Source: Thalia democratica
Taxonomy: Eukaryota
Direction of reading: 5' to 3'
Assembly: GCA_965202585.1 (NCBI GenBank)
Contig: OZ241833.1
Location: 41,912,001-41,976,000, forward strand
DNA length: 64,000 bases
A program made the position numbers and the translations under genes. Shown piece after piece: positions 4,766 through 64,000 of this stretch (the first letter of the stretch is position 1; the number at the start of each line of letters is the position of its first letter). Below the pieces are notes generated by a model. It was not told the origin of the DNA. It did not search any database and worked only from the letters and a program-made list of their open reading frames with translations.

Positions 4766-5254
4766 AGTTACGCAACAGTGGTTTACTTTATTGTTTGCTT
4801 TCAAGTAGCCATTGCGGTTTTTTTATGTTTTATGAGTGAAAACTAACAAAACAAAAAAAAAGAAAAATCCTGTATCAAAAAGTTACGTGATGAATATAAA
4901 TTTGTTTATTATAAAATATAATGTCTCAATATTCTGTTAATTAATTATATTATTATAAATATTGTTGTAAAGAGAGTAGTAATTTTGAACTATTTTTAGC
5001 AATGTGTTTACATATTTCAATGATTTTCGCAAAGTTTTAATGCATACAAAATTAAGCTTGTTATAATGTTAGTTTATTGGATTTTGTGGAAATTTTTCAT
5101 GAATGTTTTAACTCATTTTTAGCGTGTGTGTTTTGAAAGACATTTAATGAGGTGTTATGTTATAAACAACACAAAATGTTTGAAAATCATCGGTGAGCCG
5201 ATGAACCTTGTCAAACACAAAAGTGTTGAATTGCAACGTTAAATATTACTTGTA

Positions 5255-5655
5255 CAGGGTTGCCACGAAACCTGGAATCCTGGAAAAACCTGGATTTTGA
5301 CAATTTAGGCTAAAAAAACCTGGAATTTGAGAAATTTTGAAAAAAAATTGGAAAATTCATAAGTTTTGATCAAAGATTACAAAAAATATGGGGTTTAAAC
5401 AGTTTTTATAAGTTAAGTAGTAAGGTTTTGATTTGACAAAAAAATCTATCATGTAGACAAAAAATTTTTTTATAATAAAAATAAATTTAAATGATTATTA
5501 CAGTATCTTTTCAATTTTATTATACTTTTCAACACAGTTTTCAACCTTTTAATTAACTTTAAACTAAAAATAGATCCAAAAACGTGTATTTTAAAAAACC
5601 TAGAAGAAATTCAGAAAACATAGAAGAAATTTCTTAATAACCAGTGGTAACCCTG
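5255..5655. mobile_element. MITE, 12-bp TIR CAGGGTT(G/A)CCAC, 6-bp TSD CTTGTA (hAT-like by termini)
   Basis: CTTGTA|CAGGGTTGCCAC ... GTGGTAACCCTG|CTTGTA; internal CCTGGAA repeats. Confidence 0.85.
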
Positions 5656-6684
5656 CTTGTAGCTTAGTTTAAACTTAAAAAAAATGTAATTTATTAACTG
5701 TATTTAAATGTGTGTTCTATTTAGATAGACCATAATACGCAAGAACATATTGAAAATCATAACAGTTTAATAAAATGTTTTTAGCTATGAGCAAAATTTG
5801 CTTCAAGTTCTCTCTGGTGCTAGTTTACATGCAACCTAATGTGATATTTAAACTAATTTCGTTCGAGATACGTATCATGCATGGGAAAAATGTATACTAT
5901 CGTTAACAGAAAGTTTAAATTAATATGTCATCAACTTGAAACATTAAAGTTCGAACTTGCTCGGAACTTTTTTCACGGTCAGAGTTGCCTGAAGGTTGCA
6001 GATTTCAACACACCATTTAAACTGCAATCAATCAGCCGCGATCAAACAAAATGCGACTGACCGTAAAGTCAACGTTTTACATACTAGTTTCTAGCTGGTG
6101 GTTTTCTTGTGAAATATTTCGAAATAGTTCAGCGGTGTTTTTGTTCGGTCGGGATTGAAACGTTGCTGGTATGAATATCCAAAACCGACTAAAAGTGATT
6201 TATGTTTTTTTTGTTTGCGTTTTCAATTGAAAAAGTGGTTAAAAGCTAGTTCTGCATACAGGGATTTGTAAGTAAGCCGGGCGTTTTTAAAACTGATTCT
6301 TAAATTAGTTGAACAAAATTTCTTTTATTAACGATCAAAAAGATTTTGATATTAAAAAAAAAAATATTGTGGTAAATAAAACGTTTTGTGAATTATAGTT
6401 TTTACGCGTAGAAGGTAATTTGCTTCCAATTAAAAAAGTTAAAAATTCTTACAGAAACATTTACACTGATATTGCAGTTTTAAAACAGGGCGGATTAGAA
6501 AGTTAATTTTTTAAATAAATTTGTAAAGAGCTATAAATTGAACATGATGTTACTTTGCTTTCAAATTAGAAGAATATGTTTTAATTTACGTAATATTCAA
6601 AAAATATAGATCAGTATTTCTGTATATTAACACAAGTGTTGCAATAATCGTATGCATTTTAAATCAGAATGGTTTAAAAAGTTA

Positions 6685-8420
6685 CTGATTTAAGTGCAAC
6701 TTTTTAAAATTTTATTAAACAAACGTGATCACACTTTGTATACAAATGGAAATTTGAGGCGTAATTTAACATTAATTTTTTAATTAGATTAAATTCAAAT
6801 GCATGTTGCCACAAATTCTAATACATTCAAATTCAAATCACAACGGATTAAAAAGCATTACTATTGTAAGTGTAACTTTTCAAAAACTAAAAGTTTAATA
6901 TAAAATGATAAACTTTGCATACAAATGATAGTTTTGAGGCGTAATATACCATTAATTTTAAGATTTTTTTTAATTCAAATACATATTTTGTCAGAACGTT
7001 TTAAAATGCAACTTTTCAAAAACTATAGACTAAACGATACTTTGCGTTCAAATGGAAAACGTATTGACCACAAATTTTGCGAATTTTAAAATTCAAAAAA
7101 TAGCTTTAAAGACTAAAAAGTATTACCATTGTAAGTGCAACTTTTAGAAAAAATGTGCTAAACCTAGTTATGCTTTTATTTAAAAAAATAATTACTAAGT
7201 TATTACAAAAACTTCTACTTAATATTTTATATGTATTATGTTTGAACAGATTAAAAAAATTTACTATTGTAAAATGCAAGTTTTCAAAAAACTACAAACT
7301 AAACATGATACACTAAGCATTCAAATGAAAAAACGCATCAACCATTAATTTTCGAAGCGAACATGCAACTTAAAAAGTAACTAGTGTAAATGCAATACAG
7401 TACACTACCGCTTAAGTACGCAAATTGAACCCGACCAAAAAGTGCGTACTTAGCACGGGTAGTGCGTACTTTTTGACGACATAGTATAATATGAAATTTA
7501 GTTGTTTGTTTTCTTTCTTACCACTAGCCACCAAATAATTAAGCCAAACAAACAAGTCTTTTTATTTTAAATTACATTTAATACATAATTCTAATTTGTA
7601 AAATTTTTTTATAAATCTTGAAATGATTTATTTTTTCTATAAAAAGTTTCTACATAATTAATACATACATTTAATATAGAAAGTCAATGTCAGTCAATGA
7701 TTAAAAAAAAAATATTAAACTACATTTTGTTTTGTTAGAGGAAAAGTACCAAACTACATTTTGTTTACCAAACATTTTCAAAACATCGATGTATGTACAT
7801 TTAAATTAATTTATGACTTAACTATTTTGTATTTGTAGGTTTTTTTTAACTTTGTCATCTATATTTATTTTATAGCATTAAAGCTCAAATATCATTATTC
7901 TTTTTACTTTTCTGCAACTACTACGTAAGTATTTAGTTTATTAACATTTAATAACAGGACTGTCACAATCTCAGGTTACTTTAGACTACTCAGGATTACT
8001 CACCCTAGTTTAAAAGTTGTGAAAGTCTCAGGCTGACTCAGCAGGTTGGCCATTCTACCTGGAAACATAAAATAATCTGGAAAAACTTGATGATTGAAAA
8101 TTTAGGCAAAAAAACTGGAATTTCTTATAAGTTCTAGTATAACATCCTTTACTTTATCTTTCTGGATAAGTGCGTACTTAAGGCGTGATGCGTACCAAAA
8201 AAAGTGCGTACTTAAGCGGTAGTATACTGTATTATAAATTTTAACTAGAACGTAATAATACTTTGAATTCAAATGAAAAAACGTATCAACCATTAATATT
8301 TTAATTTTCGAAGCGAACAAGCAACTTAAAAAGTCACTAGTGTAAGTGCAATATTAGAAATTTTAACTAGAACGTGATAACACTTTGCATTCAAATGAAA
8401 AACGTACTAACCATGAATTT
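6685..8420 (+). repeat. Degenerate ~115-170 bp tandem repeat (gtgcaactttt...aaacgtgata.actttgcattcaaatg...accattaatttt)
   Basis: Motif recurs at ~6691, 6867, 7004, 7130, 7269, 8250 and 8340; also at ~31695-32480 and ~58070-58850. Confidence 0.7.
7398..8229. mobile_element. Non-autonomous Tc1/mariner-like element (832 bp), present only in unit 1
   Basis: TIR CAGTA(C/T)ACTACCGCTTAAGTACGCA at both ends, TA duplication (7396-97, 8230-31); empty site gtgcaaTAttagaaa in units 2 and 3. Confidence 0.85.
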
Positions 8421-11400
8421 TTCAAATCAACGTGACATATACCAAGCGCATTTTGCGCTCATCTAGCGAAAATGTGATTTGCATACTAGTTTTACATATA
8501 GCTTCGGGGCATGAATTGAATAAAGTGAAAAGTATTGATGAGTATCAACACGAATTGTTGAAAGGTCTGCCGGGTTTATTGGCTGGTTGAAACAAATTGT
8601 TTGAATATTTTCAACAGTCTGTAATTGATTTTTATGAAATGTTTGATAAATTTATAAATACACGTACAATGTTTGGAATGATGTTAAATATTTGTATAAG
8701 TTAGTTGATTCATTTTTAAAATTTTGCTGATTTTGTTGAATTTTTAAAAAAATGACATTTGTAGAAGTTAAGTTTATTTATTGAACTGTTAAATTTTGTT
8801 TAAACTGTATATATATCAATAAACTAATGTTTCAAAAAATTGCTGACATTAAAACAAATAGAACTGTATATGGAAAAAAAAACTAAATAAATTAAAAATT
8901 CTAATGTTATTTTGACAAATTAGTAGAAGTTTTGTTGTAACATGTTGTTTGGTTGAAGTAGTATGTTCAAATAACAATGTTTATTATTGCTTTAATTTGC
9001 GAAATATTCGAATTAATTATCTCGCTTAGACTATGTCTGAAGTAGTTTTAGTATAATGTTGTAAGTCATCATATTTTTTTGATATTTGTTCGTTTTAAAA
9101 CAAGCTGTACCAAAATATTGTTTCCTAAGTTTAAACTTGAACAATTTTTAATTCCACACGTTTAATATAAGTTTAGTATATTTTAAAGATAATTCGTTAC
9201 TTATTTGATTTACTTTCTAAATGGACCATGTTTTTTTGATTTATTTTCTGCATGAGTTTGTCTTGTATTTTTAACTTTGATTTCTATAAAGCTTCATAAA
9301 ATTGAATTATAAAATACTTTGAGAATTCTAAGAAAAGCAATTAGTTTTGTTCAAAAAAATTCTCACCAAAAACATTTCAAGTTTTTGTTGGTTTGTTAAT
9401 GCAAAATACAAGAAGTAAATACTATGGTTGCTTATGGTTCTTGCTAATGCTGTTTATCATTTTAATCTAAATGTCATCTTTAATGTTGTTTTTACTTAGG
9501 AAACATTTTTGTAATTCAAAGTTGTGCACTGTATACATTGTTTTTTAACTATTTAACCAAAAACACAGCTATATTTGTTTTTTAATCTAAATATTTGCTG
9601 ATTACTTGTTAAAAGAACTACAAGCAAAAAACAATCCAAGAATTTACTTCACCCTTTGTTAATTTAGAGGTATGACTCATATTTATTGTTAAATTTTTTC
9701 AAAACCTTTAACCTACTTTTTGTTTTTGAAGAACATTTTAATTTCTCTGAAAACATGAAAACGGTTGTTATTGACAAGTTTCGAAGCTAAACACTTCCTT
9801 TATGAATATACTTGAATTAAATTCAAAATAGTAGTTTTAAAAGTGGTAAGGAAAATTCAATTTCTCAACGGATTTTTTTTAATTGAAAATTAAAAATATT
9901 GAAAATATTCATTAATAACTTAAAAATAATTTCATTTAACAACTTTTTACGTCCAACAAATAGTTTATAAATTTAAAACTAGTTTATCATCACCGGGTTT
10001 TTACCAAAAACAAATATTATTTGTCTTATTGAGTTTTTGACGCATTTACAACATTAAAATTTTTTTAGCAAATTTAATTAGTTTTTCGTACAGTTTCCAA
10101 AACACTTTTAATAATGATTTATCTTTTGAAACAAAGGTTAAAAGTTACTCTTGATTAGTTGTTTTACAAACAAATGTAAAAAATTCAAAGTGAGTGAAAC
10201 AGTCTCTTTTTCTTTTCAAATTGGATTAAAAGGTCAAGTTTCAAATATTTGAAAAATATTTGTGTTTAATCTTGATTGATACGTAGAAATAATACTGAGA
10301 AAATTTAATGTTTTCTTCATTGTTGAATAAGTTACATAAAGAATTAGCTTGGAATTTAGTTTGTTTTAAAAGTTTAAAATTTTCGCAGGTGTCCTGTAAA
10401 AAGATTAGTTTTGATAGTTGGTATTTAAAACCAAGCAAGTTTTATTTTACAGTTATCTTTGCAAAAATTCAACAAACTGATTTAGCTCTAATTATAAGCA
10501 ACGTTTTTTTCTGCAAATAGAACTTTTTCGACCGTTTGTGTGGACATGAATTATTAAATTCAATCAGAATCCAAAAAATTAATAATACACGAGTTTGATT
10601 TGCATTTAAGTTGAAAATAAAGCGCTTTTTATTTTGATAACAATCAGTTTGCATGTAGTTTTCCTTTCAACGTTCAAGGTGTAATCACCTGACTTCGCAA
10701 TAATTTTTGTCAATTAAATAATTTCTTAGAAGCTATATTGATTTGTTTGTTGTTTTTATAGATTATTAACATTTAGTTATGCGGTTATATGTAATTAAAA
10801 AGAAACATTAATTACATTGTAGAACTGACTAATTTAATTTACTTATTTTTTAAACCCAGATAAAGTTAAATGTTACAATATTAGTAAACTCAGTAACGTT
10901 ATTACAAATTAAGTGTTTTTATTAATTTGTATTTTAAGCGTTTATTTATGAAATATCAATAAATAGTAAATATATATATATTTTTTGTAAACAGGTATGT
11001 GGCCGTAAAAATATATTAAGCAAAACTGATTTTTAATTAATAAAAAAAAAACTATACTTTTTATATATTGTTCTATATACTGTATTTCAAAGATATACCT
11101 TTAAAATACAGGTATATTTTAATCAATTAAAATGAAGAAGTTAAGTATAAGTTTTTGGTAAACTGTTTTAAAATTTGGTTAGATGTTTCAAAGATTATAG
11201 AAAATCATTATTATTTTACAAACCATTTTTATAATTTGAATATTATTTTAAAAGTCTATTCTAATAAAAACACGACCTTGTAATAGGCACCTAGTTACAT
11301 AAAAAACCAAATTGGCAAGCTATATGTAAATTAGATACTTAACTGCGCTCTGATTACAATCTCTACAGTTTTCAATTATTGTTGAGTTCGTGGGAACTCT

Positions 11401-12554
11401 TAAAGTTTACTGAGAAAATTTTTGAGGCGATTATAGCAAAATATTTATTTTATGTGGGTTTTTATTTTTTTAAAGAAAAGTAAACTTTAATCTGTGAGAA
11501 AAATTCCAATGAAAGTTGAACTTTGTAAACTTAGTTTGAAAAATTCAGTCTTTAAAAAAAGTTTATTTATGTTTTGTTCGCTAATATTTACATGATAAAG
11601 TTTTAAATTGAAGCAAAAAAAAAAAAAAACGATTTTCAGGTGGTTAAACTCGTATCCTTAGAGAAAGTCTTGTAATTAATAAAAAAAAAACATTTATCAT
11701 TTATTTTTATTTATTTCATTTATTTTTATCGAAAAAACATCACCTTGAGCAATTTATTTGAATACAGACTGTGGTTGAGTAGGTTATACTGGTTTAATAA
11801 ATTAAAAAACTAAATAGTAATTTATTTTTATTGGTTTAATTTGTTTTAAATAACTTGGTTGAACTCAAAACTGTTATTTTAATTCACAATTTTAACCATA
11901 ATAAATGTTTGAACACGTCAGCAAAATTAATTATTATTTAGACCAGTTGTTGATGTTGTTAAAAAAATGTTTTAGTTAAGTGGTTTTAGTCAACAGAATT
12001 AATTTTAACAGCATCAAAAATATTAATTTATCTATAAAAGCTATTCTAATTAATTTATTACTAACAATTTTTCAATACGCTAACAACAGTTCATGTTACA
12101 CATTTATTACATCACACTGTCAAAATTTGTTGAAATACAACCCAATAAAATTGTCTTGAACCTAAAATGGATGAACTCAGAATATTGTATGACCTCTGCT
12201 TTTAAACTCACATGTTTGTTTTACTTCAGAGCAAGTCTGGTAGTTAACTTGAAAAATAAAACATTTATCACACAGTTTTGTGGCTTTTGTTAAAAAAACA
12301 TTATATTAGGCAATTACAGACCAAGTCTATGTTCGTGGTTTGATACATTGAAAAATTAAACATTTTATTTTAATTCTCTGTTTTTATGTGTAATTATTAC
12401 CTCACACTGTCAAGTTTTGTTTTTATTTTTCTATTTTATCAAACTCAAGCAAATAACTACACTTCAGAATAAGTATGCTCACAAATGGTTCCGTTACACC
12501 TCTAAATAGTACTAGACATATTTTATTACAAATAACTTACTTGTGTTATATATT

Positions 12555-12960
12555 CCATCAGCTCAACAAGTTATTGTGAACTCAAACAAGTTATACGAGC
12601 CATGAACTCAATAAACTCCGTGAACTCTGCTTGGCGATGAACTAAAAAGTTTGGTGAACTCAAACTGGGTAATAAATCATGATTTAACAGCTTGCTAATA
12701 TCTTCTCTTAAACCTAAACCATAAACTCAACAGACTAAATAATGTTTAAAGTATTTTGCTACGACAAAATATTGAAGAAAATTGCGTTTAAATTCTGCAA
12801 TAAGTTAAAAAAAAATTTAACAAAAACATTTTAAAACAAACAAGGAAAAAACTTGTTGTTTTCTCACTTTAAAACACAGCATTAAAAATTCAACAAAGTC
12901 GTGTTGAACCCAGAGGGTGGATGAACTCAAAAGTTCTTGTGAACTCAAACTGCGAAATAA
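12555..12960 (+). repeat. Cluster of TGAACTCAA motifs (probable decayed repeat element)
   Basis: Many GAACTC(A/T) motifs; recurs at ~36985-37390 and ~63850-64000. Confidence 0.5.
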
Positions 12961-15900
12961 ATCACAACTTTACAGCTTGTAAATACCGTCTACTGCTTGA
13001 TGCTTTACTGAGTTTTTTTATTTATGTTGGATGGTGTTTGGATTAACTTTAATTTATTTAAAATGAGTGAGGCGTGCTAATTAAATTTTAACCTGATAAT
13101 TGAAGTGTTATTAAATTTATAAAGAAAACTTTTTATACTAACAAAGCTAAGTTAAAACTATTTAATTAAATAGAAGATAGTCTAAAAATTGATGGTTTTG
13201 TTGTAATTAAGATTTAAAAAAACTGTTAGTGAATTGTTAAACTCTGAAAAGGCTATTAAATTTCTTGAATAGTTATACATGTTTTAGCGCAAACCTTAAA
13301 TGAAAAAAGAAAATCTGAGGTATATCTCTGAATTTTATAATATAAAAATCTAATGTACAAATTTATGAAAGTTTTAACTAAATTAAATGAAAATTGAATT
13401 AGAAAAACTCTAGATTGAAGTATGCTAAGCAATATAATTAGTTAATGTTAAAAGTATTAGTTAAAGTTGTGATCTTGAATTAAAAATACACTGGTGAAAT
13501 TAGTAATAATTAATACATTTTTTTCTCAAGCTATGTCCGACTCTTTTATTTTATGATTATTTATTTGCCACTACTTCTTTATGTACTCGAAAACTCTTAG
13601 TAGCCTTAAAATGCCGTAGACTCAACGAAAAAATGGTAATTAAGTAATGTGTAATTGGCTTGTATAAGATATAAAACATGATGGTTGTTTAAATATCTTT
13701 TAAATATTTAAATAAAATTTGAAGTCATTCACCTAAAAGTTTACACAAACTTTTTTATAGTTTAGTTTAATTATATTTGTAAATTTAAACGCGAATCTCA
13801 CTTTTTTTTACTTGAAGTAATTTAATTTTTAATGTAATCAAAAAGTTTATGTGAACTCATACAATTAACTCAATGAAAATAACAAAATCATACAGTAGGT
13901 AGTCAGTAGTTCGCATAAAATTTAAAAAACAAAACATTGTGGCTCCTTAACGTAACATGGTGTCTATCAAATGTGTTTTCATTAGATTAAGTTTCGATGA
14001 ATTGTCGTAACTTGTTATATATTATATTATATATTACAACAGTTATTCGAATATCTTTAAAACAACCAAAATTGAAAGGTATTTTACTATAAAGTTTTGA
14101 ATTATTTTAACAGTTCTTAAATTGAAATAACTATGAAAAGGCTTGATGTAACATTATGATTATTTTAGCATTTTTGAAAAACGCAACTAATGTTTGGAGC
14201 TACTCGCCTAAAAAGTTTATATGTATGGTTTTTTAAGTAGACTGCTTAGGTTAAGTTGGTAGTTTTTAAAGACATGTTTTTAATAAAAATAATATTTTTT
14301 TGACTACTGAAGATTAATTATCTTTATTTTGTATTAAATATAAAGGTATGATGAATGTTAATTAGTATTTTTATTCAAAATAAACATTTACAAGAATAAA
14401 AATCAATTCAACAAATATGTTGAGTTCAAATTACTAATTACTTTATTAAATCCACTAATACTGTAACAAGTAACTTGCCGGTACCATAAAAAAAACTGGT
14501 TTACAGGTGAAATTAATGGCTTTTAATTAAACAAATCCGCAAAGTCAAAATTATCAGTCTACAAAAATTAATCACCAGAGATTTTATAAGAAATCTTGTA
14601 GCTAATCAGAAATTTATTTTTAGTTTAAATCGTAAACTAACACCTTTGAGCGCAAATATAAAACTTGCATGCAAATTATCCACTATGAAAACAAACCTTG
14701 AAATTAAATGCAAATTCGTTTTCGCAATTTCGTTTATTTGATTGCGGTCATATTGGTAAAGCTCGCAATGATAAATGCAACCTTCTAACCCGATTAACAA
14801 AGTCAGACTTGAATAAATAAACTCTAAGCTACAGAGTTGAGTATAAAACTAGTTGATGATAACAATTTGGTCATAAATCTGCTTTATTAAGAAGGAATTA
14901 CGATTAAACTTGTATTCAAATAGCAATGTGGTGATATATCGCTTTGTAACTTCCATTCAAAACACATTCATTTCTTACATTTATTTGAGGTTGAACAAAA
15001 TATACGATGAAGGTTTTATTGAAAAAATGTCCAAACTTGGATTTTATTATTGATTTTAAAATTTTAACCATTTTGGTGTGAAGTTTTAACGTTTGTACGA
15101 TAAGAAAAGTTTCTCAATAAATAAGTTTACGTTTTTTCATTCACCTAAGTAAGGCGCTTTTCCAAAGATGATCATATTATGAATTCATCGTTTTTATTTG
15201 ACGTCTTTTTTACATTGAATCAATAGATAACAAGACCATAATAAAATTTCTATCAATATGAAAGGCATGCTAAAACTTCGTACGTATTACTATTAGTGAT
15301 GTAATGACAAATCATGTTTTAAAGATAAATTTTCTCAATATTTTTCTACGTATTTACATCGATCAGTATTAACAAGAATGAATAAGAACAACTAACCTTT
15401 TAGTCATATTTTCCAAGAAATCAAAGTTATTTGAGATAATTAAAGTTATTTTACAGTGATTAGTTGTAATAATGAAAATAAGAAAATTTGTTTTAACTGA
15501 GAAACTAAAGTTTCATTTCCTTTAAAAGGATCTTTTTACAAGTAAATTAGTTTTTTATTTAGTTTTTAATAAAGTTTCTTTTAGTTGTGCAAAATTGGTT
15601 ACTTTTTATAAATTTATAAGACAATTAGTCTTTACAAAAACAATTAAAAAGTATACTTTTGAGTAATTTTTATTAAGCTTTTTAACAACTTTTTTTAACG
15701 AGTCTTTTATTTAAAGTCATAAAAATAATTTGTTGTCTTAAATTAAGTTACATCTGCTCAAAATGTTGTAAAAAATTGTAAGAAGTTTTAAAATTTTGAT
15801 TTAGTTTGTTATTCTTTCAGTAGTAACAACTACAAATAAGATTTTTAATGCGTCAATTTTGTTTAAAATGAAAAATAGATGCTACTTCAAACTTAATTGA

Positions 15901-17032
15901 ATTATCTATGATTGAATTGTTGTTGAGGTTATTTAATTTTTGAGTCAATTATTTGTTCTGATAAGCATTGAATAGGGAGTTAAAGTAGTAATTGAATAGT
16001 TTTAATTTACCATCTTTGTACAGTAATATAGAATGACATTAATTGACAGTTTGAATTAATTTGTATTATGATTACTTAAAACATTGTAGGAAATATTTCA
16101 AACTATTAAGTTATTTTCAGCTCAAAAATATAATGTTTTTAATAAAAAATATTGTAATAACTATGTATATAGTTCATAACCACTAGAATGACGCAGTAAA
16201 AATGTATAAATATTTGCTTTTTTATAAAACACCATATATTAAAAGGTTGTTTTATTACATTTTAGGCAGTAAGTTTACATAAAAAAAAAATCTAAATAAT
16301 ACTTTCCAGTTATTTTGTATGCCTTAAATAGTTCACTATTAGTTGTTTTTCAAGTTCTTCAAAGTATTGTTTAAATCGAAAAGTAAACAAAAATTTTTAG
16401 ATGTTTTTTTATTTAGTTAAAATGAATTAAATATAACTAACTTCAAGTACGTTCAACCTACTTGGCTAGATGCTTACAAAAATTACCTTGGTTTATTTGA
16501 AAAGTATGACCTATGTTATAAATGTTTCATTTTTTATTTATTTGGCGTTTAACACTTTAAATTTAAATAAAAAAAACAATTAATTTAAAGGATTTTATTT
16601 TATTGGTCTGTAAATAGTAAGAACATTGTTAACAAAATTGTAAGACAAATTGTATTACTAAGATTAAATACCAATGACACATAAATTCTTTGTAAGATAA
16701 AATTAGCATACAAAATTGTTTTTCAAATTTTATTAATTAAAATACAGCAGGTACATTTTTGACATTTGTTTTTCTTAAAAATAAATTTTATGAATCATAT
16801 GACAACAAAACTTTGAGAGAAAATTTTGACAATAGTTTTTATTGTCAAAATCTTCCTTATTTAAATAGTTGAACTTTACAGCTTTTAAAATGTTCAAAAT
16901 AATAAGCGTCAAAGCTACTACTACTGCCAAAAAGCTTACTATTGCTTTGCTAGTTTAACTGTTTACATTTAACACAAATAACATTATTAATAACATCGAC
17001 ATGAAAAATCTAGTATTATGACGTCATTACAG

Positions 17033-17172
17033 AGCCACGTGCCGCGGTGGTTGAAGGACACTCGGGTGTACAAGTGGCCGGAAGACTTTGAGGACCTGAT
17101 GTACCGAATCTACAAGGTGGCCAAGTACCGCACTCCCACGTTAGGGAAACCCCCTAAATGCACTATTACCAG
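17033..17172 (+). CDS. TRAF3IP2: C-terminal SEFIR exon, copy 1 (SHVPRWLKDTRVYKWPEDFEDLMYRIYKVAKYRTPTLGKPPKCTIT...)
   Basis: cattacAG acceptor (17031-32), phase 0. Joined to 2296 it gives FIPLLIGDANY-SHVPRW, colinear with recalled ACT1 FIPVLFPNAKK-EHVPTW. The 3' end is uncertain: possible AG|GTACGC donor at 17173, or read-through to the stop at 17302. Confidence 0.85.
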
Positions 17173-19712: not shown

Positions 19713-19738
19713 GGGGGGCTAGTGGGTGGGGGATAGGG
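19713..19738 (+). other. G-quadruplex-forming motif
   Basis: GGGGGG-CTAGT-GGG-T-GGGGG-ATA-GGG; unit 2 copy at 43994-44019. Confidence 0.6.
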
Positions 19739-19846
19739 ACGGCATGGTGTCAGCGACAGCGAGTGGTGAAAAAACAAGTAAATTTTTTAAATTTTATTTT
19801 TTAAAGAACGAAAATGGTGCAACCTCAGGAGAAGTCTGCGACTCCG

Positions 19847-19862
19847 TGGCGCCACCTAGCGG
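19847..19862 (-). promoter_or_regulatory. CTCF-like site
   Basis: Minus strand CCGCTAGGTGGCGCCA matches the CTCF core CC(A/G)C(C/T)AG(G/A)TGGCGC; unit 2 copy at 44128-44143. Confidence 0.45.
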
Positions 19863-51800: not shown

Positions 51801-54800
51801 TCAAAAGACTTTGATTAGTTAAAATCAATTTTCATTTTTCACATACTATATTAAATATGTATTAAGTTTTTATGTTTAATGTTCATATAAAAAAAATAAT
51901 TTAGCACTTTAACTTATTATTAGTAACTATATTAATTTATTTGTCTTGAATGAACAACCAAAGCAAAATCAAACGTTATATTTTAAAAGTGTAAAATATT
52001 GTACAGCAGCTTTGTATTGTTACGTCACTATAAACTAATTTATTATAAGAGCGTTTCTGAAAACTTCAATTTAGTATCAAAAAATTTTTGAGCAGTTAGT
52101 ACACTTGTGTTTTGGAAATCATCAATCACAACTTTAGACAATGTATTGAATTCCAAAAAATGTTATAAAAGTATATTTTCATTTAATTTATAGTTAAGCA
52201 TAAGCAAACTTTGTTTTATAACAAGTTGTCTTAAATGTTTATAACTACATTTAACTAAGGTTTGTAATGAAGTTTGTAAAAATAACAAATATTCAAGCAA
52301 ACTCCCTTTGTAATATAATTTAAACTTTTTGTAGTTTTCTGATACTTAATTGTGGAGTGAGACATATTTTGTTTAACTGGAACTTTTTATTTATAATGGT
52401 TAGCCTTTTTTTTAACTTATCTTAAATAAATACAAATTCAAATTACTGGTTTAAACAAAGTTATTGAAACTTCATTACAAACCTTAGTTAAATGAAGTTA
52501 TAAACATTTAAGACAACTTGTTATAAAACAAAATTTTCTAATGCTTAACTAAATAAAAAAACACTCCAATAACATTTTTGGAATTCAGTTCATTGTATAA
52601 AGTTGTAATTGATATAATTTTTAAAATACAAGTGTACTAACTGCTCAAAAATTTTTTGATACTAAATTGAAGTTTTCAGAAACGCTCTTAAAATAAGTTA
52701 GTTTATAGTGACGTAACAATACAAAGCTGCTGTACAATATTTTACACTTTTGAAAGAAAAAGTTTGATTTTGCTTTTAAGTTGCTTTGGTTTTTCATTCA
52801 AGACAAATAAATTAATATAATTACTAATAATAAGTTAAAGTGCTAAATTATTTTATAAGAACATTAAATATAAAAACTTAGTACATATTTAATATAGTAT
52901 GGGGAAAATGACAATTATTTTTAACTAACAAAAGTCTTTTGAAATTATATTACATTGATTATTGTTAAAAGTTTTTTAAAGTAGTATTTTCAGCTATGTT
53001 TATCAACTTTCTTTAGATTCAAAGCTTTACTGTATAAGACATTTTGTTAAAAGTAAGTTTTAAAACGTAAAATTATTTTACAAAAGAGTAGGAGTGCAGC
53101 TGACTCGATCTCGGGTCGCTGGATCCCGATCACTTTACAACAACCGTTCGACTACACTACCTTGCGCTCAAAAGCATATTTTTGAGTATATCAAGTCAAA
53201 ATTTCTTTTAGTAAACAATCTTTTTATTTTATTTACAATATTTAGTTAGGTTGCATATATGCAAATGTACCTAAACTTAGTTTATTTGATAGTATTTATC
53301 TGTTTAAAACCCTGTTTGCAAATTTTCTGATACTCAGAAGCTTTTTAAGTAGCTTTATTACAACTTTAGTTAGTGTACTTAGTTTAGTAGATGATAAGTA
53401 CTATTTACTAATGATCTTGGTTTACATTTTTTATTATTTTATTACATATTTTTATTTTATTCATAGATTTCACAGTTTATGGAAATGAAATTTTTTTATT
53501 TTAGCAAAAAAGTTTTAATTTTTTTCAAAACAAGCTTGTAATACATCTTGATTTGTTTTCAAAAAACAATTTAAAAACTTTTAAGATATACTGTTTAGAA
53601 AAAATAATAACTTAATTGTAATAAGATAATGCTTAGTAGTTGGAATGTGTATACTTGCTTAACTATTGTACAAAATCTTTATTTTTTTCGTGATTTGGTT
53701 GTAAACAATAAGCATTAATATATATTTTTTTTATGCATTTTATTTTATAGCTGGGAGGTTAATAAAAAAAAGAAGTTTTATAAAAATGTAAATTGTAAAG
53801 TATACAATGTAAACATATTATAGATATTTTCTAATTTAGATAGAGGGCAAAACGAAGCTTTTAAAATATCTATCCAATAAATGTAGTAGACTAAACAAAC
53901 GAATACTATTAGCTGGTAAAAAAGCTGATAAATAAATCTATAATACATAAAACTTTCTTTTACATTTTAGACTATTACAACGTGGTTTGCACAATACACG
54001 CATAGAAATTGTTCACAAATACATTCAATGATAAATTTCTAATAAATCTTCTTAAGAAAGTAGCTGTTAAGATATAGAAACAACTAAATCACAATAAAAT
54101 CAGGTTTAGTAGATAAAAGTTGTATAAATATTTATCTATATTAGACAAATATATTTTTTATTAAACTATTTTTAACAGCTCCTGAAAGTTTTTCAATATT
54201 ATCCTTAGCATTAAGTAAAATAAAACCAAAGAAATACTTGACCAGCGTTTTAATACAAGACTAAAAGTAAAAGTGTTTACCAAGCAATGTTTCGAGAATC
54301 TTAAATTAGTTTGATTTGAAAAAATGTTTGTAAAAACAATATATAAGTATTTAAACTAATAACGTCTTCAGAGTTTTTGAGTTATTTCATGCAATATTTC
54401 GTTTTAAGTTTTAGTTCGTTTTAGTAAAAAGTGTTAACTAAGCAATGTTAACTGTTTCGAGGATCTTAAAATAGTTTAATTCGAAAAAATGTTTGTAAAA
54501 ACAATATATAAGTATTTTAGTTCGTTAAAGATTCGAAATTAATTTTTAACTTTTAATTTTATATGACTTCTAATAAATTTTAAGTAAGCTTAATGCATTT
54601 TAACGAAACGAGTGTTATAATGTAATGCACAAGTTATTTCCTGACAATCTTTTAATTTTTTTGATGTTTAAGTAAAATGTTTTTTAAGTTTTAAGCATAA
54701 TTGCCATATTTTGTGTACTTTCATCGTTGTGAGAATTTTCTGGTTTCATATAACTAAACTATTGAATATCTAGTATTAATAAATTATATGAAGTAAGTGG

Positions 54801-56162
54801 TAAAAGTACAGCTAGATTTGAAGAAGTTAAATTTTAAATGGCGCTACTTTGAAAAAAAAGCTAACTTATCCACAAATCGGGACCAAAATTACAAAACTGG
54901 GTTATAAATATGATAAATTGAGTCTTAAGACTTTATATAACAATGTTTTAATCCATCTAACTCAATATATCAAATGTAAGTCGTTTTAGAAACAAGTTTA
55001 CTTTTTAAAACGTATTGCATTATTTTCTACTACAGCTGAGTCTTTCTTTATTTTGTAGGTATATTATATATATTAATATTTTTATTTATTTTTATTTAAG
55101 ATTGATATTAAACAAAAACTTTACACTTTAATTTAAATTTTTTCTTGAGTTCTTTTTATTTCAACAAGATTTAGTCCTTGATTGTAAAATTTCTTAATTT
55201 TAGGTGGTTTCCCTTTTATTGTTTGCAAGCTAAATTCAGTAAAATTGAGAAACATTTTAGCTTGTACTAAATAACTTAATATTTGTTGATTAAAAATGTA
55301 ATTTTCAATGTACACAATAAATCTAACTTTCTTAAATACATGTTTAGTTTTAAAATTATAACTTAATCTGTTTTACACCAACTGTAACCTTGTATTGTAC
55401 AAAAATCATGTTAAAATGCAAATTACTACTTTTTTTCAAATTTGACAAATAACAAGTCACACTTATCTGTAAACTCTTTAAACAAAAAAAAATACAATGT
55501 TGAAAATAAGTTGTCACTTTTAACAAACAGATTTATTGAAATTTTATTTACATATTCCTTATATAATGCCATGGTTGAGGGATTAGTAGCTTAATACAAC
55601 TTTGTCTTATTCATAATTATTTAAGATGTTTGTACAATTAGTTTCTTTTTAATGCATTTAAAGATTGAAATAAATTTCAATACTCAGTGAACCAAAGTTA
55701 TTGGATTTAATGTGTGTTTTATTGAAGGCTACAAGTAAAAAGACTAATTCCTTAAATATCTGTCTCATCCTACAGCCTTTCAAGCATTAATCTTAAAACT
55801 TTATCAGTACAAACAAAGAAAATCTACCTAAATTTTAAATTATCCTCAGCAAAAAACTATGTTTTACTTTTCTAAAACTGACTAAACCCTACAAATAATT
55901 TATTTAAAGTCTATATATTTTATAATGTTATACACTTCCTAAAATAATCAAAAATATGGATTAATGAAGACTTATGTAATAAATTAAGCTTACTAAGCTA
56001 TCAATGCAATATTATATTCAAGTAAAGTGACAAGTTTTATTTAAAATCATTTAGTTTTAACTTGTTTTTTTTTAAACTCATTGAACAACATTAATACCAG
56101 CTTTTTGGGTATTAAATATGAGACTGTAACATTATATATCTTGTTTCAAAATATAAGTAGAT
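48822..56162. repeat. Same palindrome in unit 2 (arms 48822-52275 and 52467-56162)
   Basis: Near-identical to the unit 1 palindrome apart from small indels. Confidence 0.95.
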
Positions 56163-56368
56163 GTATATTTTATTTAAAATTACTATAGTTTTACTATGCA
56201 TTTAAAAAGTTATTTAATACATTTTTGGTCCTTTTTCTCATATCATGTACACTATTTTATATAACTAGATTTTTATATACATATAGACTATTAAAACAAC
56301 TAAAGTTTATCACAAAAAGTAAAAATATCTACCATCATAAAACTTATAAAACTTCTTCATTTATAGAT

Positions 56369-59300
56369 ATGTGTTTACATATTTCAATGATTTTTACATA
56401 GTTTTAATGCATACTTAATTAAGCTTGTTATAATGTTAGTTTATTGGATTTTGTGGAAATTTTTCATGAATGTTTTAACTCATTTTTAGCGTGTGTGTTT
56501 TGAAAGACATTTAATGAGGTGTTATGTTATAAACAACACAAAATGTTTGAAAATCATTGGTGAGCCGATGAACCTTGTTAAACACAAAAGTGTTGAATTG
56601 CAACGTTAAATATTACTTGTACAGAGTTGCCACGAAACCTGGAATCCTGGAAAAGCCTGGAATTTGACAATTTAGGCTAAAAAAACCTGGAATTTGAGAA
56701 ATTTTGAAAAAAAAATTGGAAAAATCAGAAGTTTTGATCAAAGATCACAAAAAAATATAGGGTTTAAACAGTTTTTGTAAGTTAAGTAGTAAGGTTTTGA
56801 TTTGACACAAAAATCTATCATGTGGACAAAAAATTTTTGTCAACATCAAAAGTTTTTTATAATAAAATACATTTAAATAATTTTACAGTATCTTTTCAAT
56901 TTTATTATACTTTTTAACACAGTTTTCAACCTTTTACTTAACTTTAAACTAAAAATAGATTCAAAAACGTGTATTTTAAAAAACCTAGAAGAAATTCAGA
57001 AAACTTGGAAAAAATTTCTTAATAACCAGTGGTAACCCTGCTTGTAGCTTAGTTTAAACTTAAAAAAATGTAATTTATTAACTGTATTTAAATGTGTGTT
57101 CAATTTAGATAGACCATAATACGCAACAACATATTGAAAATCATAACAGTTTAAAAAAATGTTTTTAGCTATGAGCAAAATTTGCTTCAAGTTCTCTCTG
57201 GTGCTAGTTTACATGCAACCTAATGTGATATTTAAACTAATTTCGTTCGAGATACGTATCATGCATGGGAAAAATGTATACTATCGTTAACAGAAAGTTT
57301 AAATTAATATGTCATCAACTTGAAACATTAAAGTTCGAACTTGCTCGGAACTTTTTTCACGGTCAGAGTTGCCTGAAGGTTGCAGATTTCAACACACCAT
57401 TTAAACTGCAATCAATCAGCCGCGATCAAACAAAATGCGACTGACCGTAAAGTCAACAATTTACATACTAGTTTCTAGCTGGTGGTTTTCTTGTGAAATA
57501 TTTCGAAATAGTTCAGCGGTGTTTTTGTTCGGTCGGGATTAAGACGTTGCTGGTATGAATATCCAAAACCGACTAAGCGTGATTTATGTTTTTTTTTGTT
57601 TGCGTTTTCAATTGAAAAAGCGGTTAAAAACTAGTTCTGCATACAGGGATTTGTAAGTAAGCCGGGCGTTTTTAAAACTAATTCTTAAATTAGTTGAACA
57701 AATTTTTTTTTTTATATTAGATCAAAAAGATTTTGATATTAAAAAAAAAATATTGTGGTAAATAAAACGTTTTGTGAATTATAGTTTTTACGCGTAGAGG
57801 GTAATTTGCTTCCAATTAAAAAAGTTAAAAATTCTTACAGAAACATTTACACTGATATTGCAGTTTTAAAACAGGGCGGATTAGAAAGTTACTCTTTTAA
57901 ATAAATTTGTAAAGAACTATAAATTGAACATGATGTTACTTTGCTTTCAAATTAGAAGAATATGTTTTAATTTACGTAATATTCAAAAAATATAGATCAG
58001 TATTTCTGTATATTAACACAAGTGTTGCAATAATCTTATGCATTTTAAAACGGTTTAAAAAGTTACTGATTTAAGTGCAACTTTTTAAAATTTTATTAAA
58101 CAAACGTGATCACACTTTGTATACAAATGGAAATTTGAGGCGTAATTTAACATTAATTTTTTAATTAGATTAAATTCAAATGCATGTTGCCACAAATTCT
58201 AATACATTCAAATTCAAATCACAACGGATTAAAAAGCATTACTATTGTAAGTGTAACTTTTCAAAAACTAAAAGTTTAATATAAAATGATAAACTTTGCA
58301 TACAAATGATAATTTTGAGGCGTATTATACCATTAATTTTTAGATTTTTTTAATTCAAATACATATTTTGTCAGAACGTATTAAAATGTAACTTTTCAAA
58401 AACTATAGACTAAACTTGATATACTTTGCGTTCAAATGGAAAACGTATTGACCACAAATTTTGCGAATTTTAAAATTCAAAAAAATAGCTTTAAAGACTA
58501 AAAAGTATTACCATTGTAAGTGCAACTTTTATAAAAAATGTGCTAAACCTAGTTATGCTTTTTTTTTTTTAAATTAGCACTAAGTTATTACAAAAACTTC
58601 TTCTTAATATTTTATATGTATTATGTTTGAACAGATTAAAAAGTTTTACTATTGTAAAATGCAAGTTTTCAAAAAACTACAAACTAAACATGATACACTC
58701 AGCATTCAAATGAAAAAACGTATCAACCATTAATTTTCGAAGCGAACATGCAACTTAAAAAGTCACTAGTGTAAGTGCAATATTAGAAAATTTAACTAGA
58801 ACGTGATAACACTCTGCATTCAAATGAAAAACGTACTAAGCATAAATTTTTCAAATCAACGTGACATACACCAAGCGCGTTTTGCGCTCATTTAGCGAGA
58901 ATGTGATTTGCATACTAGTTTTACATATAGCTTCGGGGCGTGAATTGAATAAAGTGAAAAGTATTGATGAGTATCAACACGAATTGTTGAAAGGTCTACC
59001 GGGTTTATTGGCTGGTTGAAACAAATTGTTGAGTTTTTGCTGTAAAATGTTTGATAAATTTATGAATACACGTTGCAATGTTTGGAATGATGTTAAATAT
59101 TTGTATAAGTTAGTTGATTCATTTTTAAAAGTTTGTTGAATTTTTAAAAAAATGAAATTATAGAAGTTAAGTTTATTTATTGAACTGTTAAATTTTGTTT
59201 AAACTGTATATATCAATAAACTAATGTTTCAAAAAATTGCTGACATTAAAACAAATAGAACTGTATATGGAAAAAAAAACTAAATAAATTAAAAATTCTA

Positions 59301-62300
59301 ATGTTATTTTGACAAATTAGTAGAAGTTTTGTTGTAACATGTTGTTTGGTTGAAGTAGTATGTTCAAATAACAATGTTTATTATTGCTTTAATTTGCGAA
59401 ATATTCGAATTAATTATCTCGCTTAGACTATGTCTGACGTAGTTTTAGTATAATGTTGTAAGTCATCATATTTTTTTGATATTTGTTCGTTTTGAAACAA
59501 GCTGTACCAAAGTATTGTTTCCTAAGTTTAAACTTGAACAATTTTTTACTTCACACGTTAAATATAAGTTTAGTACATTTTAAAGATAACTTGTTACTTA
59601 TTTGATTTACTTTCTAAATGGACAATAATTTTTTTGATTTCGTTTATGTATGATTTTGTCTTGTATTTTTAACTTTGATTTCTATAAAGCTTCATAAAAC
59701 TGATTTATAAAATACTTTGAGAGTTCTAAGAAAACCAATTAGTTTTGTTTAAAAAAATTCTCACCAAAAACATTTCAAATTTTTGTTGGTTTGTTAATGC
59801 AAAATAAAAGAAGTAACTACTATGGTTGCTTATGGTTCTTGCTAATGCTGTTTATCATTTTAATCTAAATGTCATCTTTAGTGTTGTTTTTACTTAAAAA
59901 ACATTTTTGTTATTGAAAGTTGTGCACTGTGTACATTGTTTTTAACTATTTAAGTAAAAACACAGCTGTATTTGTTTTTTAATCTAAATATTTGCTGATT
60001 ACTTGTTAAAAGAACTACAAGCAAAAAACAACCCAAGAATTAATTTCACCCTTTGTTAAATTAGAGGTATGACTCATATTTATTGTTAATTTTTTTCAAA
60101 ACATTTAACCTAGTTTTTGTTATTGAAGAACATTTTAATTTCCCTGAAAACAGAATAAATTGTTAAAAACTAACATCAAAGTTTAATACTTCCTTTATAA
60201 TTGTACTTGGATTAAATTCAAATAAGTAGTTTGAAAAGTAGTAAAGAAAATTTAATTTCTCAACATATTTTTTATAGTTAAAAAATAAAAAGTATTTGAA
60301 ATTATACACTAAATAACTTTAAGATAATTTGATTAAACAACTTCTTATGTCCAACAAATAGTTTTATAAATTTAAAAATACGTTAGTATCTTACCCGGTT
60401 TTTACAATAAACAAATATTATTTGACAAGTTTTTGCCACATTTACAACATTTAAAAATTTTTAGCAAATTAATTTTTTGTACAGTTTCCAAAACACTTTT
60501 AATAGAGATTTATTTTCTGAGCAAAGCAAAGGTTTAGTTTAAAACAAAGGTTAAAAGTTACTCTTGATTAGTTGTTTTACAAACAAATGTAAAAAATTCT
60601 AAGTGAGTGAAACAGTCTCATTTTCGTTTCAAATTGGATTAAAAGGTCAAGTTTCAAATGGTTGAAAAATATTTGTGTTCTTTCTTGATTGATACGTATA
60701 AATAACACTGAGAAAATTTAATGTTTTCTTCAATGTTAAATAAGTTACATAAAGAATTAGTTTGGAATTTAGTTTGTTTTAAAAGTTTAAAATTTTCGCA
60801 GATTTACTCCTAAAAATCATTGGTTTTGGTAGTTTGTTTATTAAACGAAGCAAGTTTTATTTTACAGTTATCTTTGCAAAAATTCAGCAAACAGTTTTAG
60901 CGTTAATTGTTAGCAACGTTTTTTCTGTAAATGGAAATTTTTCGACCGTTTGTGTAGACATGAATTATTGAATTCAATCAGAATGCAAAAATTAATAATA
61001 CACGAGTTTAATTTGCATTTAAGTTGAAAATAAAATGCTTTTTATTTTGATAACAATCAGTTTGCATTTAATTTTCCTTTCAACGTTCAAGGTGTAATCA
61101 CCTGACTTCGCAATAATTTTTGGTCGTTAAAAGATTTCTTATAAGCTATGTTGGTTTGTTTGTAGTTTTTGTAGATTATTAACATTTAGTTATGCGGTTA
61201 TATGTAATTAAAAACAAACATTAATTACATTATAGAACTGACTAATTTAATTTACTTATTTTTTAAACCCAGATTAAATTAAATGTTACAATATTAGTAA
61301 ACTCAATAATGTTATTACAAATTAAGTGTTTTTATTAATTTGTATTTTAAGCGTTTATTTAAAAAGTGTCAATAAATATTAAATAAATATATATATTTTT
61401 TTGAAAAACAGGTATGTGGCCGTAAAAATATATTAAGCAAAACTGATTTTTAATTAATAAAAAAAAAACTATACTTTTTATATAATTGTTCTATATACTG
61501 TATTTCAAAGATATACCTTTAAAATACAGGCTTATCAATTAAAATGAAGAAGTTAAGTATAATTTTTTGGTAAACTGTTTTGAAATTTGGTTAGATGTTT
61601 CAAAGATTATAGAAAATCATTATTATCCTACAAATTATATTCATAATTTGAATATTATTTTTAAAATCTGTTCTAATAAAAACACGACCTTGTAATAGGC
61701 ACCATGTTACATAAAAAACCAAATTGGCAAGTTATATGCAAATTAGATACTTAACTGTGCTCGGGTTACATATAACTTCCAATTATTGTTGAGTTCATGG
61801 AAACTCTTAAAGTTTACTGAGAAAAACTTTAAGCCGATTATAAGAGAATATTTGTTTCATGTGGGTTTTTATTTTTTATGAGAAATACAAAGTTTAATCT
61901 GTGAGGAAAATTCCAATAAGTGTCAAGTTTTATAAACTGAGTTTGAACAATTCAGTCTTTTTTAAAGTTTCTTTATATTTTGTTTAAAAAATTTTACATT
62001 TTAACCAAATGAGTTATTTTTATAGTGGTTTATGTTTATGTCATAACTACGTGGTCTCCAGTAACTTACTGACTGCTATACTTACGAGTAGTAAGTAGTA
62101 TGCTAACACTATAAGTTACAAAACTATTTCCTAAGTTATGAATAAAACACACTTTGAACAAATGCAATTTACTTTATTTTCAATAAAAATTCTTAGTTGT
62201 GAAGAAAGAAACTATTAAATCACGACACAAATAAAATCTATAAAAAGTATCAACAATCGTAAAGTTATATAAATACTAACATCAACTCAGCGATGTAGAC

Positions 62301-64000
62301 GTTTTCTTTATTCTCAAAACTTGAATAAAACGTTGAACTCAATCGTAACTTGATTGTAAAGCGGAATAACTAAGCAACTAAATAAGCAACTAACGCGTAT
62401 TTGAAAGACAAACGCAATATATACGGATTGAAATGAAATTAACTCCTTAAAGTAAAAAAATTGTTTGTTTCTGGTACTGGAAGAACGTCACGAAAACTTC
62501 GTAAATCAATTTACAACATCCGCTTTAAAATAAGAAAATGAAATGTTAATATCATTACAACACGATAGAGTTTTAAATTCAAAAAAAAAACAATTTTAAG
62601 GTTGTTAAACTCATATGTTGGTTTAAGCTTAAAGCAAGCCTGGTGATTAATTAATTTAAAAAAAACATTTATTGCACAACTTAATTATTTTTTTCGAAAA
62701 AACATCACCTTGAGCAATTTTTTTGAATACAGTGTGGTTGAGTAGGTTTTACTGGTTTAATAAATTAAAAAAGACTTATTTGTAATTTATTTTTATTTGT
62801 TTAAGTTGTTTTAAATAACTTGGTTGAACTCAAAACTGTTTATTTTTATTCACAATTTAACCATGATAAATACTTAACACCTCAGCAAAATTAAATAACT
62901 TTAGATAAACCAGTTGCAATATTTTAAATAAAATATTTTAATTAGGTGGTTTGAGTCAACAGATTTAATTTCAACAGCATTGAAATTATTAGTTTATCTA
63001 TCAAAGCTATTCTGTTCGATTTATTACTAGCAATTTTTCAATACGCTAACTACAGTTCATTTTTATCACATATTTATCACATCACACTGTCAAAATTTGT
63101 TTTAAATAGTCAAACTCAAACAAATTATTAAGCATCGAAATAGGCACAAGAGGTTCTTATCACACCTATACATAACCTTTGAAGTTTTTATTTTAACTAA
63201 GTAATACATACAAGTTGCAATTATTTTGCTATTAGTTCAAAAAGTGATATCGAACTCAATAAACTAAACTAAATTTAAACTGTTTTGTTATAACGAGATA
63301 TTTTGCAGTGGCTTGCTCTATTATTCTGTAATTAGTCCAAAAAGTTTTCGTCAACTGAAAAAGTTGGTTGAAACAAACAAGGTTTTTTTTTCTTTTTTCA
63401 AAGCACCCAGCGTTTGCATTGAAACACAACCAAATAAAATTGTCTTGAACCTAAACTGGATGAACTCAGAATATTCAATGACCTCTGCTTTTAAACTCAC
63501 ACGTTTGTTTTAACCCTAGAGCAAGTCTGGTAGTTAACTTGAAAAAAAAACATTTATCACACAGTTTTGTGGCTTTTGTTAAAAAAACATTATATTAGGC
63601 AATCACAGACCAAGTGTATGTTCGAGGTTTGATACATTGAAAAATAAAACATTTTATTTTAATTCTCTGTTTTTATGTGTAATTATTACCTCACACTGTC
63701 AAGTTTTGTTTTTATTTTTCTATTTTATCAAACTCAAGCAAATAACTACACCTCAGAATAAGTATGCTCACAAATGGTTCCGTTACACCTCTAAATAGTA
63801 CTAGACATATTTTATTACAAATAACTTACTTGTGTTATATATTCCATCAGCTCAACAAGTTATTGTGAACTCAAACAAGTTATACGAGCCATGAACTCAA
63901 TAAACTCCGTAAACTCTGCTTGGCGATGAACTTAAAAGTTTGGTGAACTCAAACTGGGTAATAAATCATGATTTAACAGCTTGCTAATATCTTCTCTTAA
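56369..64000 (+). repeat. Tandem segmental duplication unit 3 (truncated by window end)
   Basis: Colinear with 5002-12711 and 29981-~37145; position 64000 corresponds to 12711. Confidence 0.95.
56622..57040. mobile_element. Same MITE, unit 3 copy
   Basis: Apparently identical to the unit 2 copy (offset 26,388). Confidence 0.8.

Follow-up and report, generated by a model that had tools for sequence, protein, structure and literature searches.

Part of a gene that its sequence assigns to the CIKS/Act1-like SEFIR adaptors lies in a 64,000-nt stretch of the Thalia democratica genome (assembly GCA_965202585.1, contig OZ241833.1, positions 41,912,001 to 41,976,000 of the forward strand; hereafter the window), and the 3' end of this gene is repeated in a head-to-tail array. 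Each unit of the array carries a complete two-exon 3' module, made up of exon C, a short intron, and the terminal exon D. A genome search with the exon region found 11 copies on the chromosome holding the window (C9) and two on an unplaced contig (C1028); coordinates are window positions unless prefixed C9 or C1028, and for units 4-10 the sequence examined was the 3.2 kb around each exon C. The same 50 C-terminal residues are encoded by 13 of 13 modules, while the five upstream exons are single-copy. Judged by the substitutions that separate them, the module copies do not look like freely decaying orphans.

Structure and splicing of the 3' module

Transcript sequences were taken from Logan contigs of four marine metatranscriptome runs (X1 to X4), aligned on positions 15000-20000; they derive from mixed plankton samples and represent wild relatives of the sequenced animal. 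The contig loose end before 17033 reads the last codons of exon B (IPLLIGDANY), and thus exon B is joined directly to exon C. The joint between 17172 and 17579, which removes an intron with GT..AG borders, was found in three runs (X1, X3, and X4). In X3 it reached a depth of 860, with an exon depth of 1047, and in X4 a single 343-nt contig contained 84 nt of exon B, the whole of exon C, and 122 nt of exon D. These results show that the mRNA is formed by splicing of exon B to exon C and of exon C to exon D. A previous reading of the window from its letters alone (the sequence-only reading) had proposed that only the last SEFIR exon is multiplied and that the copies at 17033 and 41522, each with its own acceptor, are terminal. 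Both copies do have an AG acceptor and exon C is the last SEFIR-coding exon, but each unit holds two exons, C and D, and the RNA splices the supposedly terminal exon on to exon D.

Exon D consists of 10 coding nucleotides, a TGA stop codon, and the 3' untranslated region (UTR), giving a protein that ends in ...CTITRYVN. The same ending is encoded by the ortholog mRNAs L045 and L046 and by the contig L048. In copy 1, exon C is bordered by a CAG acceptor and a CAG/GTACGC donor, and RNA supports exon D to approximately 17792-17927, its 3' end being approximate; L048 reaches 336 nt past the stop codon. The exon C acceptor, the GT donor, the exon D acceptor, and the TGA are intact in 13 of 13 copies, and all 13 also keep the poly(A)-type hexamers ATTAAA (17681, 17709, and 17842 in copy 1) and AATAAA (18144). 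Differences among the modules are confined to synonymous sites, the length of the intron, and the 3'UTR (approximately 5-10%). The C-D intron measures 406, 400, and 409 nt in copies 1, 5, and 11, respectively, 199-202 nt in the other C9 copies, and 172 nt on C1028; a 197-nt indel explains the length classes. Copies 1 and 2 of exon C differ at 17089 (T/C), 17143 (A/G), and 17167 (T/C), so the three synonymous differences named in the sequence-only reading are real, and the T at 17089 is private to copy 1. Position 17170 (C/A) also distinguishes some of the copies.

The start of the C-D intron (17173-17185, GTACGCTT(TT)GA) resembles the start of exon D (17579-17591, GTATGTCAATTGA). Copies 2, 3, and 11 lack 2 nt here, and their unspliced read-through therefore ends in RYA and a stop, near the spliced ending RYVN.

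Substitutions among the module copies

The substitution spectrum of the aligned non-coding flanks served as the neutral yardstick for the 13 copies of exon C, which contain seven variable sites, all of them third-position and all synonymous. For all 13 copies, 7 synonymous changes were observed with 7.4 expected, and no non-synonymous changes with 16.4 expected (Poisson P(0) = 8e-8). For the 11 C9 copies the corresponding figures were 4 and 5.3 for synonymous changes and 0 and 10.6 for non-synonymous changes (Poisson P(0) = 2.5e-5). When the longest path through the unit tree was treated as one always-functional lineage, the other branches still had an expectation of 4-6 non-synonymous changes (P = 0.003-0.02). 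Exon C is not immutable, as amino-acid changes have accumulated in it between species: the comparison with L045, a more distant ortholog, yields 7.5 non-synonymous differences (a proportion of non-synonymous differences, pN, of 0.07), a level like that of exons A and B. The flanks of exon C are 9-14% variable and its synonymous sites vary at the flank rate. The neutral sites in and beside exon C have therefore not been homogenized, and conversion appears too rare to have erased non-synonymous changes selectively. Orphan copies, which the sequence-only reading had offered as one explanation of the array, would be expected to decay, and the modules do not look like decaying copies in these data, in which all signals are intact in 13 of 13 modules and no non-synonymous change is found where about 16 would be expected.

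Explanations for the intact modules

We propose that a segmental tandem amplification started inside the last long intron of the CIKS/Act1-like gene and multiplied the complete 3' module instead of a single exon, while the five upstream exons stayed single-copy. As all 13 modules are intact and give the same 50 residues, any of them can complete the message and leave the protein unchanged, and they form a redundant set of interchangeable ends. The first module would probably be the main one, as it is reached first, and the remaining modules would be kept under purifying selection at the protein level. This could come about if transcripts sometimes skip or read through to later modules, or if unequal crossing-over rotates units into the used position. 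We consider it an even chance that the modules other than the first owe their intact state to some degree of use, or to being used in turn. The stronger claim, that several of the 11-13 modules are truly used and individually selected, with one protein made from messages that differ in the 3'UTR and last intron, we regard as possible and on the unlikely side. As the modules differ only in synonymous sites, intron length, and 3'UTR, any functional consequence of the choice among them would be post-transcriptional.

Several points weigh against this proposal. The selection test rests on seven substitutions in 140 nt, and the RNA comes from wild relatives, so that multi-copy use in the sequenced animal is putative. 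Ordinary co-transcriptional processing would favor module 1 and end the transcript there. Unit exchange, or the capture of allelic variation, could yield a non-synonymous rate (dN) of zero without simultaneous use, and the array may be a functionless by-product.

The main competitor, which we hold to be somewhat less probable than an even bet, is that a single module is used, most likely the first, and that the other 10-12 are passengers, either young or continually refreshed by an unstable array. Their intactness would then come from unequal crossing-over, gene conversion, or the capture of filtered alleles from a very polymorphic population, and not from selection on each copy. Neighboring units are 99.5-100% identical over several kb and 85-92% in other stretches, as would follow from recent exchange. 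Identity per kb between units 1 and 2 ranges in a mosaic from 85 to 100%, with 99.5-100% over most of the 25-30 kb interval, and this mosaic indicates that units have exchanged sequence recently; likewise, exon copies 7-10 are nearly identical to one another, which points to a recent duplication. The difference between transcripts and modules (approximately 5-7%) equals that between modules, and allelic diversity may therefore match unit diversity. First-come-first-served splicing and polyadenylation, as generally understood, would also favor module 1. On the other hand, the variability of the flanks and the flank-rate divergence of synonymous sites indicate that homogenization is infrequent, and the best case for this explanation, the single functional lineage considered above, still gives P = 0.003-0.02. 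Moreover, an origin of the array in at least five distinct functional alleles would need several independent exchanges between homologues. The other explanations, namely modules shared among gene bodies, a cassette for protein diversity, and an assembly artefact, are improbable even when taken together; each is treated below with the evidence that bears on it.

Transcript variation and module usage

At the end of exon B, 6 of 30 positions in the RNA do not match the window, each a synonymous difference, and this exon B variant was absent from the genome in a search at up to two mismatches. The best module match to the UTR of L048 is 95.4% and none is exact; wild transcripts differ by approximately 5-7% from every reference module. 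The letters of exon C in the RNA are of the copy 2/3 type (C, G, C) in X2-X4 and L048 and of the copy 4+ type (C, A, C) in X1, while the private T of copy 1 occurs in no RNA contig; these contigs come from other individuals or lineages. Assignment of the RNA to single copies was rejected in view of the six mismatches in exon B and the lack of an exact module for the L048 UTR.

The contig L048 (positions 440-1550) begins with exon -1 and the first 88 nt of exon A at 97-98% identity to the window. There follow an intron-like stretch of 44 nt and then a second exon A and an exon B that are 91-93% like the window (proportion of synonymous differences, pS, 0.43-0.46), and the contig ends in an exon C identical to copies 2/3 and a UTR approximately 95% like the modules. 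Read conservatively, L048 is a chimeric assembly of two co-occurring lineages; the alternative is a real mismatch between gene body and module. Such a mismatch would be expected if the C-D modules were shared by more than one gene body, through trans-splicing or exchange between lineages, and both L048 and an independent Logan contig do join an A-B part with 43-46% synonymous divergence to a C-D part with 0-10% divergence in exon C and a UTR at approximately 95%. We nevertheless judge sharing to be highly improbable: L048 has the signs of a chimera, with exon A present twice and an intron tail between, the samples behind both assemblies are mixed plankton, this genome lacks the variant A-B, and in comparisons at greater divergence exon C follows the pattern of exons A and B.

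The sequence-only reading had further suggested an alternative-last-exon cassette array, and in a version that generates diversity the modules would give the adaptor different C-termini. The topology fits, as one gene body faces many intact modules that have acceptors and 3' ends of their own. The unspliced read-through tails also differ, with RYA and a stop in copies 2, 3, and 11 and a 40-residue AT-rich tail in the others, and an unspliced form exists among the ortholog mRNAs: L047 (1223-1447) runs into the intron, reads AGG TAA, and ends in ...TITR and a stop, compared with the spliced L045 (1101-1236), which ends in RYVN and a stop. However, the 13 spliced modules encode one identical set of 50 residues and leave no room for protein diversity, and the C-D intron is removed in the RNA, as the joint and exon depths in X3 show; copy-specific C-termini by read-through, as once proposed, do not apply to a spliced mRNA. 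What stands of the suggestion is the arrangement itself, and a cassette for protein diversity has only a slight chance of being correct.

Downstream of exon D, the interval 17839-18476 had a depth of 15-48 in X1 and X2, compared with 4-5 for exon C, at 4-8% divergence. This signal probably comes from a dispersed repeat expressed elsewhere and not from the UTR of the gene.

Extent and assembly of the array

A k-mer offset count and self-BLAST showed that the window, which is very AT-rich (approximately 25% G+C, with short GC-rich islands), contains three units of a head-to-tail repeat. Identity from unit to unit within the window is 84-97.5% by segment. The junctions are sharp: the 290 nt that precede the unit 1/2 and unit 2/3 borders are mutually identical, and the DNA preceding 4992 is unrelated to unit-end sequence. 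The first unit begins inside the long intron between exons B and C, in agreement with the sequence-only reading, and the tandem array of approximately 25-kb units that it described is real and much larger than the part it described, with 11 units on C9 and two more on C1028. The third exon copy, predicted near 68,300, was found when the adjacent sequence was inspected, at the equivalent of window position 68,355. On C9, successive exon C copies are spaced by 24489, 26833, 24610, 17885, 25631, 24737, 34343, 17076, 24596, and 23919 nt (range 17-34 kb, mostly 24-27 kb), and the array spans C9:41916992-42175552, or 258.6 kb. Unit homology ends approximately 2.3 kb past the 11th exon copy, and hence the last C9 unit is partial. 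The unplaced contig C1028 (31.5 kb, 1-31550) holds two shorter units of 14.9 kb each, whose modules have three private synonymous changes (corresponding to 17065, 17068, and 17074) in addition to the 172-nt C-D intron; C1028 represents either the other haplotype or a stretch of the array that the assembly failed to resolve.

The two variant units on this unplaced contig do mean that the region is incompletely resolved, and haplotypes or collapsed repeats set in tandem by the assembly would give such a picture. Yet two haplotypes are unable to yield 11 units, the units differ by 3-15%, by the 197-nt indel, in the number of 421-nt minisatellite copies (2 or 7), and in length (17-34 kb), and the junctions are exact in a window free of gaps (zero runs of N), so that an assembly artefact has next to no likelihood.

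Within the unit, a 7.3-kb inverted repeat must predate the unit duplication, given that the same arm is 96-100% alike between units 1 and 2. The remaining GC-rich islands were considered as further coding exons and rejected, being tRNA-like heads of short interspersed elements (SINEs) or repeats without open frames. Such GC-rich SINE heads lie at 19652-19795, 25195-25312, and 26699-26817, and ARAGORN found no intact tRNA among them. A 24-nt tandem repeat of 15.8 copies occupies 4389-4766, approximately 225 nt upstream of the first array junction. A scan for bacterial promoters and terminators, irrelevant here, gave counts equal to those of shuffled sequences.

The gene and its SEFIR domain

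An exhaustive HMMER search with exon B led to P0001, a 354-residue protein from a marine metatranscriptome, which matches the Pfam SEFIR family (PF08357) with 48 bits against a cut-off of 23 and covers profile positions 2-149 of 150; more distant relatives pass the same test. The spliced product of the window (204 residues) is 81% identical to residues 151-354 of P0001, aligned through the last residue, and scores 272 bits against a hidden Markov model (HMM) of seven Pfam-verified relatives, with shuffled sequences at 3.8 or less. Exon C alone has a weak Pfam SEFIR match (E = 0.16, profile positions 126-149 of 150), and Pfam gave no match for the other single exons; single exons are too short for this search. 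The nearest clusters in the ESM Atlas carry the name 'adapter protein CIKS'. AlphaFold models the SEFIR domain of P0001 (residues 180-330) with confidence (predicted local distance difference test, pLDDT, 75-92), as alternating strands and helices in a TIR-like alpha/beta fold. The equivalent of exon C in this model is the last short strand and the last helix (323-330), and thus a message without exon C would encode an incomplete SEFIR domain.

The N-terminal 175 residues of P0001 are disordered and the SEFIR domain is C-terminal, the layout of a cytoplasmic adaptor. On these sequence and model comparisons we assign the gene to the CIKS/Act1-like SEFIR adaptors, and a companion claim of the sequence-only reading to this effect fits the P0001, HMM, and Atlas results. 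The likeness to Act1/CIKS/TRAF3IP2, which acts in IL-17 signalling, lies in the C-terminal SEFIR domain after a disordered N-terminal half and in a length of 310-350 residues. The difference is that neither a U-box nor a helix-loop-helix was detected in the N-terminal part, where Pfam reported SEFIR/TIR only, and a role of this gene in IL-17 signalling is putative. A six-frame search of the genome with the SEFIR profile missed the split gene at this locus and recovered three SEFIR loci elsewhere. When the spliced product, in a version with incorrect exon A borders, was compared by BLASTP with two receptor-type SEFIR domains of the same genome, no match was found, and word-indexed protein searches with exon C, P0001, and P0018 as queries returned no additional transcripts. 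No member of the SEFIR adaptor family is known to have an amplified 3' end, and literature searches turned up no report of terminal-module amplification in a SEFIR gene.

Gene body, neighboring genes, and feature coordinates

The features of the window are listed in Table 1. The phases of exons -1, A, and B are compatible, and exon B is 79% identical to residues 239-304 of P0001. Two further exons lie approximately 5 and 14 kb before the window, one of them with a start codon. In the 802-Mb assembly, exons A and B have one occurrence each at the DNA and protein levels, which agrees with the earlier statement that the units lack the upstream exons. The possibility that the variant exons stem from another gene body was rejected, as A and B have their sole genome match at this locus.

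The intron behind exon B contains a minisatellite in which the last codons of exon B and its splice donor (GGAGATGCTAATTAT on the exon side and GTTAGTTG on the intron side) recur in about four tandem copies, at 2368, 2519, 2662, and 2739. The exon B end of the wild RNA has three mismatches to these minisatellite copies and six to the live exon end. A RING-finger exon lies on the same strand 11 kb beyond the array (C9:42186600-42186830, plus strand); it has a putative resemblance to the RING of the TRAF-interacting protein TRAIP. On the opposite strand, a kelch-repeat exon is located approximately 40 kb upstream of the window (C9:41872300-41872680, minus strand).

Table 1. Position and properties of the gene, module, and array features in the window.
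Feature	Position	Strand	Properties
Exon -1, coding	8-98	+	Single copy, ends in phase 1; AG/GT borders, open frame; 97.8% identical to L048
Exon A, start of SEFIR (VFITY...)	1744-1916	+	Single copy; splice borders; matches ortholog mRNAs
Exon B, mid-SEFIR	2099-2296	+	Single copy; phase 0 end ...GDANY/GT; splice borders
Intron from exon B to first exon C	2297-17032	+	14,736 nt; array starts within it at 4992
Intronic minisatellite	2383-2760	+	Last codons of exon B and splice donor; Tandem Repeats Finder periods 70, 77, 143
Exon C, copy 1	17033-17172	+	140 nt, last 46 SEFIR codons and 2 nt; acceptor and donor used in RNA contigs
C-D intron, copy 1	17173-17578	+	406 nt; GT..AG joint 17172/17579 in X1, X3, X4
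Exon D, copy 1, terminal	17579-17927	+	G TAT GTC AAT TGA, stop 17589-17591, then 3'UTR; RNA contigs
Exon C, copy 2	41522-41661	+	AG acceptor; peptide as copy 1, 3 synonymous differences
Exon D, copy 2	41861-42200	+	Stop 41871-41873; 3' limit approximate
Array unit 1	4992-29970	+	24,979 nt; self-BLAST, junction comparison
Array unit 2	29971-56358	+	26,388 nt; self-BLAST, junction comparison
Array unit 3, start	56359-64000	+	Own exon C at C9:41980355, 4.4 kb beyond window end
Minisatellite, 421-nt unit	21629-22471	+	2 copies in unit 1
Minisatellite, 421-nt unit	45912-48859		7 copies in unit 2
Inverted repeat, 7.3 kb	22434-29774	.	Arms of approximately 3.5 kb, 88-89% identity (self-BLAST)
Inverted repeat, unit 2 counterpart	48822-56162		Self-BLAST

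Discussion

We class the locus as a tandem partial-gene duplication that creates redundant alternative terminal modules, and three known arrangements help to place it. In Drosophila lola and mod(mdg4), a shared set of 5' exons precedes tandem 3' modules that encode different domains, and the use of multiple modules is proven and occurs partly by trans-splicing. The present gene likewise has common 5' exons and then tandem 3' modules, each with an acceptor, a stop, and a 3' end. It differs in that the modules give one peptide, that the units are approximately 25 kb long and 85-100% alike, and that multi-module use is putative.

In Dscam and Mhc, tandem exon duplication has given rise to mutually exclusive exons. 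Here also an exon has been duplicated in tandem with its splice sites, and its 140 nt are not a multiple of three, so that two copies of exon C in series would shift the frame. The literature that bears on tandem exon duplication includes PMC2257972 and the bioRxiv preprint 10.1101/133215. In contrast to a mutually exclusive cluster, a shared downstream exon is absent here: exon C is spliced to the exon D of its own unit, the next coding exon found downstream belongs to the RING-finger gene, and each copy has its own terminal exon and stop and is identical at the protein level.

The kringle IV-2 repeat of human LPA is a two-exon unit of several kb, and all of its units are spliced in series, lengthening the protein. 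The two loci share a multi-kb two-exon unit repeated within one gene, probably with a variable copy number, whereas in the present gene only one module can enter each transcript and the protein stays unchanged.

When part of a gene is duplicated in tandem, the usual expectation is that the extra exons end up dead. In this 11-13-fold, quarter-megabase amplification, every copy is intact and unchanged in amino acids, while its neutral neighbors have diverged. The analysis corrects the gene model, and gene predictors may set the end of this gene anywhere within 245 kb. If the additional copies are unused, the array measures how far unequal exchange alone can keep unused exon copies functional-looking, and it would be a caution for claims of function that rest on dN/dS (the ratio of non-synonymous to synonymous rates) in tandem arrays. 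If several modules are truly used and individually selected, the locus would be an alternative 3' end array that serves post-transcriptional control or the fail-safe completion of an immune adaptor. The copies, if used, would provide a natural example of one such adaptor served by many interchangeable 3' ends, and a clean system for the study of splicing and 3'-end choice among near-identical, distant acceptors and poly(A) sites.

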